The notes under the pieces: generated by a model
Database searches by the model: none
What the model saw: the letters and a program-made list of their open reading frames with translations, nothing else
Told to the model about the DNA's origin: nothing
Translations under genes and position numbers: made by a program
Origin: Piromyces finnis finn
Taxonomy: Eukaryota > Fungi > Neocallimastigomycota
DNA: 64,000 bases
Assembly: GCA_002104945.1 (NCBI GenBank)
Contig: MCFH01000003.1
Span: 248,001 to 312,000 of the forward strand
Direction: 5' to 3'
In this document: positions 5,464-14,117 of the stretch, one piece after another
Numbering within the stretch: the first letter of the stretch is position 1
Layout of the letters: every line of letters begins with the position of its first letter

Positions 5464-8450
5464 ATGAAAATTGGCTATGTTGGTATCAATAGAGTAAAGA
5501 AAAATAATAATAAAAAAAGAATATCTAAATTAATATGAATTATATATATTTTAAAATTTTTTTTTTTTTAGTATGTATTAGCAGGTCAAATTGGTGACTT
5601 GAGCTTATATAAGGTATTCATTACACATTATATAATATATATAATATATATTTAAATAATAAGGATTTAAATAATAAGGAAGACTTTTTTTTTTTTTGTC
5701 ATTATGAATGAATAGTATTAACTTTAGAATCTAAATTAATATATTATTTTATACATAATATATATATTATATTTTATATATTATATATACAAGGCAGAAG
5801 CATTAGCTCATTTTTTAAATAGAAATTTACCATCTTATCATTTTGAAATTGTCAAGGTACCACCATCTCAATGGCATTCATTTGTTGAATATTTAGTTAT
5901 GAAATTATGGCATCCTAAACGGTTTTTATATTATCATCGATTATCAACAAAGGTACAAAAAGCAATATCAAAAATTGTTGAAGTTAATGATTTAATGACA
6001 ACGGATATAAAATATAAACCATGGGAATTATTAGAAAATTGTCAATCAACATCATTAAAGAGTGAAAGTTTAATTAAAGAAAACTCAAAAAAAAGTATTA
6101 GTAGCAGACCTTCGAAAAGTAAAAGTTTAATTAAAGAAAACTCAAAAAAAAGTATTAGTAGCAGTAGTAGTAGAACACCTTCAAAAAGTAAAAGTTTAAT
6201 TAAAGAAAACTCCAAAAAAAGTATTAATAGTAATAGCATACCGTCACTTAACGAAAATAATGAAGAGAATGCATTATCAAAGTCACCCTCAAAAGATGAT
6301 GATAAAAATAAAATAATTAACATTAGTTTAGATACAGTAAAACAAACTATCGTTATAAGTACAGAGGATATACTTCAATCATCGGATACAAATCTTTCAA
6401 ATGAAAAACCAAAACCGGAAGATAATAATAATGATATCATAAATAATAATGAAAACATCATGAAAACGAACAATTCATCTGTATCCCTATTTTCAGATGA
6501 TCAAACCGGTATAATTCACATTTTTATGATATATTTTTTATTAATCCCATAAAATTAATTCGTAAATTTTATGTTATATTTTTTTTAATGATAATATAAA
6601 TTATATATTAAAATAAAATATAATATATTATATATTAAATGAAAAGAAAGCCTTGATTCATTAGCTAATGAAGATGATGATACTACTACTTCTAATAATA
6701 ATAATAATGGTGATGATAATGGAAATAATAATAGTAATAATGATGAGGGTGATAATGATAATAATAGTAGAATAATTTCAACTGGAAATAATGGTTCAAA
6801 TATTAGTTTTAGTAAATCCAACTCTAATAGTTCATCGTTTAGTGATTTAAATTTAGATGATAATGATAATGACAATAATATTAATACAATGAATATAAAT
6901 CAAGCCACAAATGAAATTCAAAGGGATAGTTCTAATAATAATAACAACAACAACAACAACAATTTTGCTGAAGGTGATTCAGCTCCATCCTCTAATAATG
7001 AAAATAAATCTGATAAAATTCCAAACGAATCCTATTATATATTACCATATGAAGTGGATGTTCATATTCAATCTATTTTAGAAGAATTACCCCAATTTAC
7101 ATGGAAAGTTGACGGTGAATTTATTGGTAATTTATATTTTTTTTTTTTTTTTTATTTATTTAAAAAAATATTATTCATATTAATTTATACTTTATATATT
7201 ATTAATAAATGTATAGGTAATTGTGATTCATTCTTTAAATATGTAAGACAAGTATATCCTATTACATTATAACATCCGAAAAAACTTAAATTTTATTAAT
7301 TTAGGTTTTTTTTTAGAACTTTTGTTATTCTATTCATTTCATATATATATATATATTAATATACTTATTTCTAACTTTTTTTGTAATAAATACATTTTAT
7401 AATTTTTTTTTTTTTACATGAAAATGAAAGATTGAAAATAATTATGGATATCAAATACAAATGGATGAAGATTTAATAGAAGAAATTGCTGATGAAGATG
7501 TTAATACACAAAAATATAATGTATCTGACATTCCAATTATATTTAGTACATCAAATGACCAATACTTCAAAAATATACCACGTTTATCAGAAATTTCTAA
7601 TAGTTTATCCAATGATTACATTAAGAAGCATAAGACCCATATAGCAATTAAGAAATTCCGTCATCATCTTAAAAATACTATAGATGATATTAAATATGAA
7701 GATTATATTAATAAAACATATAATAATAAAGATTATTCTTCTGGATCGCTTAATTACAGCGATTTAGAAATTGATTCTGAAGATTTAGATGAACATGAAA
7801 ATGGAAATAATGAAAATGGTTATAATAATTATGATGATGATACTAAAGAAGATTATATTAGATCACCAGTTCGTCGTTATCATAAATATGTCAATGATGG
7901 TAATGGAAATTCGGCATCAAATTATTCAAATGACAGTTTATTAACTCCAATGAATTCAAAGTATACACCATCCACTAAACCACAATCCAAGAATGAAAAT
8001 ACAGAAAATGTACAATATAATGATGATACTATTGAAAGTCCAGAAGAGCATGTAATGGATGAAAATGAAATAAACAAAGAAGAAAATATGGATAATAATA
8101 ATAATGATGAAGAAATAGAATATTCATATAAAGCTGATCTTTCTTCAGATGTTGACGATTCAAACGACAATAAGGAAATTCATTTAAATGAACAATTTAG
8201 TGATGATGATGATGAAATAATCGAACAGATTGATGATACAGAAACTGCCAACATGGTCAACATGGTAGATGAAGTAGATAAAGGAGACATTGAAGAAGAT
8301 ATTATAAAAGAAAGTAACGAAATAATAAATCAAGTTAGTAATAGTAAAGAAAATGAAATATCTAAAGTAGTATCCTCATCAAATTCAAGTAATAATATTG
8401 TAAGAAAAACTATATCCGGTTCAAAAGGTTCTCTTCAAAGATTAAATTAA
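5464..8450 (+). CDS. MDH1B/PPIL6 N-terminal-type glutaredoxin-like domain protein with long low-complexity insert and acidic tail, about 770 aa, 6 exons
   Basis: Exons 5464-5493, 5572-5613, 5794-6508, 6647-7126, 7217-7242, 7431-8450 join through GT-AG introns in frame (2313 nt). YVLAGQIGDLSLYKAEALAHFLNRNLPSYHFEIVKVPPSQW and FTWKVDGEFIGNCDSFFKYIENNYGYQIQMDEDLIEEIADE resemble the two halves of the MDH1B/PPIL6 N-terminal domain as I recall it. Confidence 0.65.
6061..6230 (+). repeat. Three coding copies of KSxSLIKENSKKSI
   Basis: agtttaattaaagaaaactc recurs at 6067, 6124 and 6193. Confidence 0.85.
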
Positions 8451-8950
8451 AGTTTTACACATATATTTATTTTATTATATATCCAATTTACATTCTTTTT
8501 TTTTTTTTTTTTTTTTTTTTGTATTAAAAATTCATTAATGAAAAATAGTGGATAAAAAAAATTTTTTTTAAAATTTAAAATAAAAAATCAATATTTATAA
8601 AAGTAATCTCATTTACCAAGGGATTTAATAATAAATATATAAAACTATAGTCTTATTATTTAAGAGTATTAGACTATATGTAATATTGTTTAAGATAAAT
8701 TAAGTAATTAAAATTATTTAAAAATAGTGTTAGTTCTATAGTTTTTAAGAATAATATAATTAATTATTGTAAAATCTTTTTAATTCTCAAAACGTTAATT
8801 TATAATTTTTTTTTTTTTTTTTTTTGTAATTTTCATTCCTATTATTTTTCATTCTATTCTCTTTAAATAAAATATATTATAATAAAAAAAAATTTTTTTT
8901 AAAATAATTCATTCCTCATCAATGATTTAAATATTTTGTTTTTTATTAAT

Positions 8951-10965
8951 ATGGATAGAAGAAATTTAAGGTATACAAAACTTCAATCTGTTCAATATAA
9001 TGATAATTCTATAGTAGAAAATCTTAACATTCCCTATAGATCATTCATCGAAAATGAAAAAGGATATGAATTAGAAGTTTCATGTAAACTTTTAAATTCT
9101 AGAGGAAGAATAGGCGGTCCTTTACATTTAAAATTAAATATTATTAATATAGGTGGTATCAATATTGAAAATTTTAAAATAGATATAAATGCTTATTCTT
9201 CTGAAGATAATAGAACGCCTTATTATGACAGGTTTGCAAAAATATCAGACATTATAATAAAAATATTACATTAATTCAAATTTATTATGTATACCTATTG
9301 AAATGATGTTTTAATGTTATATATATATATATATATATAAAATGGGGGGGGGTTGAATTAAATTTAATTCATGTTAATAATGATAGGTTTGTTTTATGGA
9401 TTAAGGAAACCTTGGAGGTTGGACAATCAATTGAAAAAGACATTACTTTACAGAATTCATATAGAGAATTTGATTTAAGTTATAATGATTTATCTTCATT
9501 AATTACAAATTCAGAAAAAGATTTAAGAAGTCTTGATTATAAAATACCACGTTATAATGATTTATTGGATTTAACCTCAAAAACAAATTTACAATCAAAA
9601 ACAAAAATCTTAGATGCAATATCTAGCACAACGGGCACTCCTTATGATATAATAAAAGCGGAAGATTTTGATGATGATTCGTCAAAGGAAGATGATTCCG
9701 ATAGATTAAGAAGTTCAGATGAATTTTTAGCAGTGCCGATTGAAACTAAAGATAATGATATTAGTTTTAGTGATGTAGATAGCCTTATGGAAAGTAAAAA
9801 AATATCAAATCGAACGAAAAGAAATATGAGTACAGATAAACAATACCATCAAATCATTAGTCCAATATACGATAATTTTTATTGTGGTGATGATACCTTG
9901 GTGATTAATAAGAAAAAAAAGATGAAATCTATTTTTTTAACCGATGATTTTGATTATTTAATATCCACTTTACCTTCTATCATTCATATTGAATTTAAAC
10001 ATAGTGATATGAGACCCATTCCATGTCGTCAATATCAATTTAAATTATGTTCTGAATACTTTACCGGTGATTTATTAGTGGCAAGACCAGGAATGGTTAT
10101 TCCAAAAGATAAAACTCCAAGATATTCGCATTACAATATTTTAATGCTGGGAACTTGTAAAAATGGGAAAACATCCCTCGTGAACAGTATACTAACTTTA
10201 TTTAATAATAGAGTAACATTGATGAGTCCCTATCTTCATAAATTATACCATGAAAATAAAAGTTATTTATTATATAACATTAAGGATTTATTACCAGAAT
10301 CTTTACATGTAAGGTTCTATGATTGTCCTTTAGATTCAATAAGTGCTTTTTCAAATTCACAGTATTCCTACAATAACTTAGATTTAGTATTAAATGGCAA
10401 TTTCCCATACGGTTTTCTCATCAATTCAACTAATGTTGACCTTATCGGTAAGGTAACAGATGATAAACTTCATAAGAGATTATCCTATAATAATCTTAAT
10501 AGTTCAGTATATTCTTTAACAAAACTTTATGGTAATGAAATGTCTGAGCTAAAATCGAGACCTCTTTCAACAAATTCTCCTTTATTGTCCTATAGAACAA
10601 AATTAAAAGATTCCACATCAAATCTATCCAATAAAAATAGTTTATCAAAAATTCATGTTGTTATATTATCAATATCCTATACAATTGTTGATTCATTAGA
10701 AGAGTTTAAACTTTACGTAAAATTATTTAAATATATAACCCAATTAAATATTCCTGTTGTAATTGCACTCACAAACACAGATCAACTTTCTCAGGAAAAA
10801 ATTGAGGAATACGTTACAACGATAAATAATTCATTTAGATCCTATCATGTCTACCCAATATCCAATTATACACTATCAAATAATAAATTAAAGTCGTTTG
10901 AAAGAGATAGGTAGAAGAATAATAATTAATTTATAACTTTTATAACAACCTATATAAATGATTTA

Positions 10966-10996
<31 letters not shown>

Positions 10997-12105
10997 TTTT
11001 TTTACATTTTATAAATTAAAAAATAATAAAATATAATCCGTTCAAATATGCCTATTGATATAATAATAACAAAAAAAAATATAAATTTATGTCAATAATT
11101 TACTGAATGTATAAATGAAAAAAAAAATAATTAAATAGAAATGTATTAAGATTACTTAGTAATTCCATATATTTAGCTCACAATTTTATTTTCAAGGAAT
11201 TTAATGAAGAAAATATTAAAAAAGCGAATTATATTAAAAATAAAAGTTGTTTTGACTTGGATAGTCAAGTAAATTATGAATGCCAATCCATGATGTTTGA
11301 ATCAATAGTTAAAAAAACAAATGATACTACTTTATGTGCAACAGATGATTCTAGTAAATATAGATTAGATGGATTAGTTCCATTTATGGGTGAGGAAAGT
11401 TTAAATGTTATTGATATGACAAAATATTCAAAAGATCAAATTAATAGTTTACACGAAGATATAAAATATGATGGTACCATATTTGAAAATATTACTCACT
11501 ATGATATTTCAGGTGAAGAAGAAATCGATGTTATTCTTGCATTTGATGCAGCTTGTATTGTTGACCAAGAAATGCTAGATTATGTAAAATATATTGGATT
11601 ATCCATCACATCACAATACCCCAGTAATATTAATATTGGTGGATTTCTGTTTGGTGAAAAAATGCAAAATATTTCCAATGTTACCTATAATAAATTATTA
11701 TTTGAAAATCGTATTGTAGCCTTGGATCAAAAAGAAAATAGACATAGTGCTGATGGGGATACCTTGTATAGAACTTTGAATCATTGTAAAACATTATTGG
11801 ATGCCCAATACAAATTGTCCAATAGACAACAATTATGGATTTTTATTTCTGAATGTAGTAATGATAATTACTATCAAAATCAAATAAAGAAGCTTGCTGA
11901 AACTTTACGTGGTAATAAATACAATGCTGAAATCTATTGTTTCTACCTTAGAAACTCAATTGATGATGACCCATTTGAAAAATTTTTACAATCATTTGCT
12001 GATCTTGTTGTAATCTTCAATGATATTTCAAGTATGTACAATTATTTAACACCTCCAACAACAAGTTATAATAATATGTTAAATCCGAAATTATATTTAA
12101 AGTAA
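8951..12105 (+). CDS. Arrestin-C-like beta-sandwich + IFI44/IFI44L-like P-loop NTPase + vWA domain protein, 919 aa if it ends at 12105
   Basis: Exons 8951-9231, 9387-10910, 11151-12105 with two phase-2 introns, 2760 nt in frame. Walker A GTCKNGKT; LDLVLNGN, KIHVVI, IALTNTD and PISNY match the IFI44 motif order. DVILAFDAAC, IGGFLFG, TLYRTL and LWIFISE give a vWA pattern. Confidence 0.75.
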
Positions 12106-12372
12106 ATAAGAACTATCTTAATACTAATTTAACACTAAAAAAAAAAAAACTATTACTATATAAAAGTTTATATAATATATATAAATATCATTTACATTAT
12201 TTTACTAATAATATATTATATAATTTTAAAAACGTTAGGTTCCTTAAAATACTTAGAGAATCATCAAAAATGTAGGGAGTTATATAATAATTATGAATTA
12301 TTTCATTATAATAAGATATGCTCTATCATTAAATCTTAATTATGAAAATTTTTAATATATATTTATTGACAG

Positions 12373-14117
<1,745 letters not shown>

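Follow-up and report, generated by a model that had tools for sequence, protein, structure and literature searches.

A predicted IFI44-type G domain joined to leucine-rich repeats in a conserved protein of anaerobic gut fungi

Introduction

IFI44 and IFI44L are prominent interferon-stimulated genes. Here, we describe a gene of the anaerobic fungus Piromyces finnis whose product carries a G domain resembling that of these animal proteins, placed in a different architecture. The gene lies at 8951-14111 on the plus strand of a 64,000-nucleotide stretch (the window; contig MCFH01000003.1 of assembly GCA_002104945.1, positions 248,001 to 312,000) and comprises 14 exons with 3495 coding nucleotides, corresponding to a protein of about 1164 residues.

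The fungal protein shares with animal IFI44 and IFI44L the P-loop context GxxxxGK[ST]S-[FL]-[IV]-N-S, the motif LxLVLxGxxPxG[FY], an IHxV strand, a TxxD motif that replaces NKxD, and the sequence [FY]P[IV]xNY with a D..LL helix after it. It differs from them in lacking a TLDc domain, in the loss of the switch-I threonine and of the glycine of DxxG, and in an insert of about 75 residues within the G domain. Arrestin-like, vWA-like and leucine-rich repeat (LRR) domains are added, and the host is a fungus without an interferon system. The need for the GTP-binding site is disputed for IFI44 itself (bioRxiv 10.1101/2020.02.24.963900).

Two other described systems are close in layout. NLR proteins, immune receptors of animals and plants that combine a STAND NTPase with LRRs, are built on the same overall logic: they are soluble, begin with an accessory domain, carry a P-loop NTPase at the centre and end in LRRs, whereas the NTPase of the fungal protein is TRAFAC-type and IFI44-like and its gene is neither expanded nor hypervariable. 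Our searches and fold models used the separate exon pieces of the window and the full-length natural orthologue P0004, and no Pfam match to NACHT or NB-ARC was found in either. Because known fungal NLRs mainly use WD40, TPR and other non-LRR repeats (review PMC10197012), a soluble protein with a P-loop G domain and LRRs is unusual in fungi. ROCO proteins (LRRs, a Roc GTPase and COR; for example, LRRK2) likewise carry LRRs and a G domain in one polypeptide, an arrangement that makes intramolecular regulation by nucleotide state plausible. In the gut-fungal protein, however, the LRRs are C-terminal rather than N-terminal to the G domain and there is no kinase, and Roc and COR gave no Pfam match in the window pieces or in P0004. 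A full-text literature search turned up no paper on an IFI44-type domain that occurs in fungi or is joined to LRRs, in agreement with an earlier note on this DNA, whose author knew of no account of such a domain combination. We class the protein as a new architecture within a known G-domain family, here in a new kingdom.

Results

A conserved gene joining a G domain to leucine-rich repeats

We consider it likely that the locus is one 14-exon gene whose product consists of an arrestin-like sandwich, an IFI44-type G domain, a degenerate vWA-like domain and nine LRRs, and that this product would act as a nucleotide-gated scaffold. The gene is real, expressed and conserved in gut fungi. Contigs assembled from the public run X1 lie on exons only and skip introns at GT..AG at every intron tested; they behave as spliced transcripts, the RNA label of the run being a guess. 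This read evidence covers 8900-12930, and the exons from 13074 onward rest on collinearity with orthologues. It counts against the complete model that, for the exons at 13074-14111, the reads back nothing but the joint 12776|13075, through a single loose end.

The closest proteins come from Piromyces sp. E2, Anaeromyces robustus and Neocallimastix, which bears out the anaerobic-fungus host proposed in the earlier note; no fungal relatives beyond Neocallimastigomycota were found. Thirteen of the exons were mapped by alignment and are collinear with A. robustus ORX81647.1 (P0004, 1168 residues), with one split codon between neighbours, and the Neocallimastix californiae protein ORY85906.1 (1216 residues) has the same order of parts. 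In both the A. robustus and the Neocallimastix protein, the vWA-like domain leads without a break into the LRRs. The orthologues are named "hypothetical protein", "L domain-like protein" or "R13L4/SHOC-2-like LRR domain-containing protein"; these names cover at most the LRR part. The earlier note had described the product as an arrestin-C, IFI44 and vWA protein. These domain calls hold to different degrees, and the architecture is incomplete, since the C-terminal array of nine LRRs was missed.

The repeats are plant-type, 24-25 residues long (LxxLxLxxNxLxGxIPxxIGNL), and each occupies one exon with phase-2 boundaries throughout. Because both sides of each exon are in phase 2, gain, loss or skipping of a repeat would keep the reading frame. 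The LRR exons are collinear with residues 939-1154 of P0004, with 142 of 204 residues identical (~70%). P0004 matches Pfam LRR_8 (4.9e-22) and LRR_14 (5.3e-20), and two of the window exons show weak LRR_1 matches. The exons measure 72 nucleotides (the last 75) and mostly have TT|GTAA donors; the introns measure 71-297 nucleotides and have ~13% G+C.

In the three main exon pieces, signal peptide and membrane segment are absent and the maximum 19-residue hydropathy is 1.38, features that make a cytosolic, soluble protein the most likely prediction. Each of the four modules serves in interaction or as a switch, and the protein appears soluble; the scaffold reading that we propose is the most economical one. 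The G domain would bind guanine nucleotide, probably with slow or no hydrolysis, and its nucleotide state would govern the access of partners to the LRR, vWA-like and arrestin-like surfaces. Such a soluble nucleotide-gated scaffold would be analogous to NLR and ROCO proteins, not homologous with them. One published result weighs against the proposal: deletion of G1 from human IFI44 left its activity against respiratory syncytial virus (RSV) in place (bioRxiv 10.1101/2020.02.24.963900). As that deletion did not abolish anti-RSV activity, a nucleotide switch is not established even for the animal family.

The same layout could belong to a receptor that serves innate immunity in the fungus, analogous to NLRs but built on a GTPase, whose LRRs sense a microbial or viral ligand. 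Such a receptor would be in keeping with an NTPase coupled to C-terminal LRRs, with the interferon-induced animal relatives of the G domain, and with a module that pairs with varied accessory domains elsewhere (zinc ribbons in the metagenomic protein P0010, TLDc in animals). We nevertheless consider it unlikely, given how the gene has evolved. The gene looks like a stable orthologue, and no other copy was found either in the exhaustive phmmer search, which covered these gut fungi, or in the 64-kb window. The number of repeats is equal in Piromyces, Anaeromyces and Neocallimastix. The LRRs are conserved about as well as the rest of the protein (~70% against the A. robustus orthologue), and at that level of identity they are not hypervariable, unlike those of arms-race receptors. 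Because of this stable orthology and ordinary LRR conservation, a fast-evolving pathogen receptor is disfavoured, and a role as a conserved adaptor in signalling, trafficking or surveillance is the better fit. The defence or trafficking role suggested in the earlier note is pure conjecture.

The G domain is assigned to the IFI44 type

The G domain and its recognisable elements are as follows.

10114-10910, plus strand: G domain; its last helix (NVLRLLSNSIY..) lies in exon 3
10150-10173, plus strand: G1/Walker A motif GTCKNGKT, conserved in orthologues
10312-10332, plus strand: degenerate G3, YDCPL
Within the G domain, plus strand: family motif LDLVLNGNFPYGF
10423-10647, plus strand: low-complexity insert of roughly 75 residues, between the LNGNFPYGF motif and the KIHVV strand
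10765-10782, plus strand: G4-like LTNTD (LTNVD in the fish protein, TKGD in the clam protein)
10858-10869, plus strand: YPISNY

The motifs from which the earlier note had recognised the domain are all present in plus-strand frames where it had placed them: GTCKNGKT (10150-10173), YNIKD (10273-10287), LVLNGN (10384-10401), KIHVV (10648-10662), ALTNTD (10765-10782), ISNY (10858-10869) and ERD(R) (10900-10910). The same is true of those that it had quoted from the N-terminal region, LEVSCKL (9071-9091), GGPLHLKLNIINIG (9113-9154), QYQFKL (10030-10047) and TGDLLVARP (10063-10089).

An exhaustive phmmer search against 1.84 billion representatives returned 10 matches, comprising five gut-fungal orthologues or fragments, one clam protein (P0009), two metagenomic proteins (P0010 and P0011), and two others that looked like low-complexity matches, covering short segments of the query within its low-complexity parts. 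The clam protein, which is named "interferon-induced protein 44-like" by NCBI (Ruditapes philippinarum XP_060588661.1), was matched at E 2.2e-5. P0010 in turn matches a fish protein (P0031) at E 5.9e-5, and in the latter a Pfam TLDc domain (1.8e-11) precedes a G domain, which is the IFI44 architecture. Comparison of exon 2 with the clam protein and with the fish TLDc-GTPase by BLASTP gave the same collinear blocks.

Profile comparisons agreed with these matches. The fungal G-domain profile aligned by hhalign to an IFI44 profile built from the fish TLDc-GTPase and the clam domains with 97.8% probability and E 9e-13 over 194 columns; the fungal set against the P0010 family gave 94%, and the P0010 family against the IFI44 set gave 99.4%. 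Reversed or column-shuffled IFI44 profiles, used as controls, gave <=0.5%. When the P-loop and the following helix were removed from both sides, the alignment kept 84.5% and E 7e-6. The motifs LxLVLxGxxPxG[FY], IHxV, TxxD and [FY]P[IV]xNY, then D..LL, are collinear and specific to the family, and the nearest neighbours of the G segment in protein-language-model space were chordate MMR_HSR1 and "IFI44-like" clusters (0.94-0.96). On these comparisons, the IFI44-type assignment made in the earlier note is well supported.

We also weighed the reading of this segment as a generic or other TRAFAC GTPase (AIG1/GIMAP-, septin- or EF-Tu-like), in which the likeness to IFI44 would come from the P-loop and chance. 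No Pfam model passed its cut-off on any of the window's own pieces, and the only Pfam matches on the G domain are sub-threshold ones to GTP_EFTU (18.7 bits) and AIG1 (16.9 bits), both at the G4 region; pairwise identity to IFI44-type proteins is 18-22%, and the shallowness of the hhalign profiles (effective number of sequences, Neff, 1.6-2.3) counts against the IFI44 assignment as well. Set against this, no other GTPase family appeared at E 1e-3 in the exhaustive phmmer search, sequence searches of the PDB with the G part were blank or insignificant, and the profile search of the PDB returned no significant GTPase, its best match being EngB at E 0.16. The better match to another family that would have spoken against IFI44 was therefore not found. 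The hhalign match persists without the P-loop region, and the collinear motifs are specific to the IFI44 family. We thus regard assignment to another family as quite improbable.

The motif alignment with the IFI44-type proteins keeps an intact G1, the Walker B aspartate and the G4-like LTNTD. It shows the loss of the switch-I threonine (N in the fungi where relatives have T) and of the DxxG glycine (YDCPL; YDAPL in the gut-fungal metagenome protein P0027). Nucleotide binding is therefore predicted as likely and efficient hydrolysis as doubtful, hydrolysis being expected to be slow or absent because two residues of the catalytic switches are lost.

The likeness to IFI44 holds for the G domain and does not extend to the whole protein. 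No Pfam TLD match was obtained on any piece, and hhalign of the N-terminal profile against the TLDc region of the fish protein gave 0.3%, which ruled out the N-terminal sandwich as a divergent TLDc. The protein thus has an IFI44-type G domain but no TLDc and does not qualify as an orthologue of IFI44.

Within animals too, the architectures that include this G domain vary: the clam protein has two tandem IFI44-type G domains, and a TLDc match was absent from it in the Pfam scan. The metagenomic family (P0010, P0011 and P0028-P0030) resembles the fungal protein in having an N-terminal beta-strand domain directly before the IFI44-type G domain, and the phmmer alignments extend from the strands that precede the G domain into it. 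It differs in that DxxG is intact, the big inserts are absent, and C-terminal double zinc ribbons take the place of the vWA-like domain and the LRRs. Comparison of the N-terminal domains, using fungal rows only on the fungal side, gave a weak hhalign match (9.6%, E 0.003) confined to the last 40 residues. Two short, intron-free metagenome contigs of 1794 and 1631 nucleotides (L001, JGI 3300031057, and L002, JGI 3300028647) encode a beta-domain, an IFI44-type G domain and double zinc ribbons (P0010 and P0029). P0029 has an extra N-terminal alpha/beta region, and hhalign (0.1%) ruled out that this is the fungal vWA-like domain in permuted order.

Gene structure and splicing

The gene is divided as follows.

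8951-9231, plus strand: exon 1, which contributes the start codon and the opening strands of the N-terminal beta-sandwich (YELEVSCKL..GGPLHLKLNIINIGG..FKIDINAYS), assigned from the open reading frame (ORF) and the sequence; donor AG|GT at 9232
9387-10910, plus strand: exon 2, with the remainder of the first beta-sheet part (9388-9453), an acidic insert of low complexity (~9463-9837), the second beta-sandwich part (9838-10113) and the IFI44-type G domain (10114-10910), assigned from the translation
11139-12101, plus strand: exon 3, with the final G-domain helix (11140-11230) and, after a variable linker, the vWA-like alpha/beta domain (~11491-12099)
12102-12238, plus strand: intron 3, whose GTAAAT donor overlaps an apparent stop TAA (12103-12105); a contig joins 12101 to 12239 across GT..AG, with 33 letters on the far side
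12239-12271, plus strand: exon 4, a 33-nucleotide mini-exon (FLKILRESSK) with joints 12101|12239 and 12271|12373
12373-12444, 12549-12620, 12705-12776, 13074-13145, 13217-13288, 13405-13476, 13575-13646, 13723-13794 and 13888-13962, plus strand: nine LRR exons with AG/GT boundaries and open frames
14069-14111, plus strand: last exon, NVYGTKIKNNLYI plus the stop TAA (14109-14111); its acceptor AG is at 14067-14068 and the frame stays open up to this TAA

Three long open frames on the plus strand (8951-9274, 9412-10914 and 11257-12105) are united in one frame by GT/AG sites. The start ATG at 8951 given in the earlier note is correct, being conserved in the Anaeromyces and Neocallimastix orthologues. 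Exon 1 is 74% identical to residues 4-90 of P0004 and exon 2 is 65% identical to residues 92-602. One contig end is consistent with the joint 9231|9387, and a transcript contig matches 9547-10910 without differences. After 10910 this contig continues with AAATGTATTAA, a loose end that equals 11139-11149, and contigs cover 11155-12101 of exon 3. The joint is therefore 10910|11139, and the acceptor at about 11151 chosen in the earlier note is 12 nucleotides off; in place of ERDRLL, the protein reads ERDR-NVLRLL, the same as the orthologues.

The end of the gene also changed. The earlier note had closed it at 12105, where the TAA proves to be intronic: the splice from 12101 to 12239 removes it, and the gene continues through 11 small exons to 14111. 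Across the position of intron 3 the orthologues read NPKLYLQ-FLKILRESSK, and the 10 residues of exon 4 are all identical to residues 928-937 of P0004; this exon is the N-terminal cap and linker ahead of the LRRs. Transcript contigs contain the joints 12271|12373, 12444|12549, 12620|12705 and 12776|13075 toward the LRR exons, and a scan for AG...GT exons with open frames supplied the remaining downstream exons. The 14th and last exon was located by its acceptor and open frame and matches the orthologue C-termini NIHGTKLKKNTSV and NIQGTKIKKKKFL. Exons have 26.1% G+C and introns 12.7%, in a region that is very AT-rich.

The apparent stop is a by-product of the splice site, because retention of a phase-2 intron whose donor is GTAA invariably yields xxG TAA, and the same effect recurs at most LRR exons through their TT|GTAA donors. 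It is thus highly improbable that the true product is a short protein of 919-923 residues (arrestin-like, IFI44-type and vWA) ending at TAA 12103-12105, with the LRRs a separate gene or optional extension: this TAA is in frame, Piromyces sp. E2 OUM63098.1 also ends at NPKLYLK, and retention of the intron would give exactly such a form, a minor retained isoform being compatible with the contigs, but a transcript contig passes from 12101 to 12239 and on through LRR exons, the A. robustus and Neocallimastix proteins are unbroken from vWA to LRRs, and OUM63098.1 is visibly mis-built.

OUM63098.1 looks mis-annotated on three counts: its C-terminus falls at the same false stop, a portion of the G domain is skipped, and a homologue of the ORF that lies upstream of the gene in the window is fused to it. 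This ORF (7461-8450) encodes an acidic low-complexity protein of 329 residues. The fusion is probably an annotation error, because the Anaeromyces, Neocallimastix and P0027 orthologues start at the methionine equivalent to 8951. Separately, an AAT/AATAAACGT microsatellite (12830-13042; AAT repeat core 12934-13038) occupies most of the 297-nucleotide intron between LRR exons 3 and 4 and gives poly-Asn or poly-Leu ORFs on the two strands.

A probable vWA-like domain with a degenerate metal site

The C-terminal part of exon 3 is best read as a vWA fold that has diverged and lacks a normal metal site, a probable assignment that draws on weak models. Against Pfam VWA, the orthologue from A. robustus reaches 22.1 bits (E 1.9e-4), below the cut-off of 23.8, over profile positions 1-152 of 174, and the protein-language-model neighbours of the segment are all VWA clusters (0.93). 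In the AlphaFold2 model of exon 3, built from a shallow alignment, beta strands alternate with alpha helices. In a structural comparison of this model with VIA, ~45 of the 50 best matches were vWA domains (Z 9.5-7.4, 120-150 residues aligned), including those of collagen VI and VII, Rpn10, vWF A1, integrin I domains, Ku and the Rea1 MIDAS domain, and the best Foldseek matches were again vWA domains at E about 1e-3.

Several results weigh against this assignment. Pfam VWA has no match on the window's own segment, the sub-threshold score was seen in one of nine relatives only, and the exon 3 model is poor, with a mean predicted local distance difference test score (pLDDT) of 39. A profile word search with the vWA alignment recovered gut-fungal fragments only, and PDB sequence and profile searches with the vWA part were blank or insignificant.

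The elements of the metal-ion-dependent adhesion site (MIDAS) are degenerate.

11545-11559, plus strand: FDAAC
11755-11763, plus strand: GDT
11848-11856, plus strand: SEC

Compared with the MIDAS pattern DxSxS...T...D, the window sequence has D-A-A-C-I, keeps the T, and has S-E-C for T-D-G; A. robustus has D-G-S-R-I. Of the vWA domain proposed in the earlier note, its presence as a vWA-like domain in the same transcript is upheld by the contigs, whereas the MIDAS motif is degenerate and the window segment lacks a Pfam match.

A plausible arrestin-like sandwich at the N-terminus

For the N-terminal region, we modelled residues 1-345 of the A. robustus orthologue with AlphaFold2 from a shallow alignment. 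A six-stranded beta region (residues 28-112), in which the residues that correspond to exon 1 form beta strands, has pLDDT 65-84. Beyond it lie a long disordered insert and, at 245-295, strands of low confidence. Foldseek comparison of this poor model with the PDB gave 60 matches at E <= 0.001, of which the top 50 were all arrestins (8.7e-5 to 7.4e-4, ~100 columns), and the top row from the ESM Atlas was an arrestin-C-like cluster with a template modelling (TM) score of 0.33. With VIA-align, arrestin C-lobes gave Z 7.8-7.9 and the longest alignments, spanning 125-140 residues on both sides of the insert.

The arrestin reading is weakened by the mean pLDDT of the model, which is 43, and by a tie in VIA-align, where GH2, transglutaminase and adaptin-ear beta-sandwiches also reach Z about 8. 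Neither Pfam Arrestin_N nor Arrestin_C matched the window pieces or their relatives, even with E values up to 10 allowed. Rather than the two lobes of an arrestin, a single sandwich of ~170 structured residues precedes the G domain. We therefore hold a single arrestin-like sandwich, split by a disordered acidic insert, as a plausible fold that is favoured but not secure. The split arrestin C-domain seen in the earlier note agrees with the arrestins that top the Foldseek matches, but the low pLDDT and the competing beta-sandwiches leave it insecure. For the vWA and arrestin calls alike, the models are weak and the fold matches serve as supporting evidence only.

Discussion

A wider reading of these comparisons would make the IFI44-type G domain an ancient, pre-metazoan module that is joined to varied sensor and adaptor domains across eukaryotes and that, in gut fungi, serves as the nucleotide switch of a non-STAND, LRR-bearing intracellular receptor. 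We regard this as doubtful. Were it true, gut fungi would possess a GTPase-based counterpart of NLRs and would offer a tractable model for the biochemical role of IFI44.

The finding also bears on annotation, as the names of the orthologues reflect at most the LRR part, so that the G domain is hidden, and OUM63098.1 stops at a false stop. The occurrence of a clearly related G domain in fungi and in eukaryotes from metagenomes, without TLDc and in other architectures, shows that this module has a greater age and a wider use than one would expect from the animal family, and these proteins provide non-animal systems in which the IFI44-type G domain may be studied.

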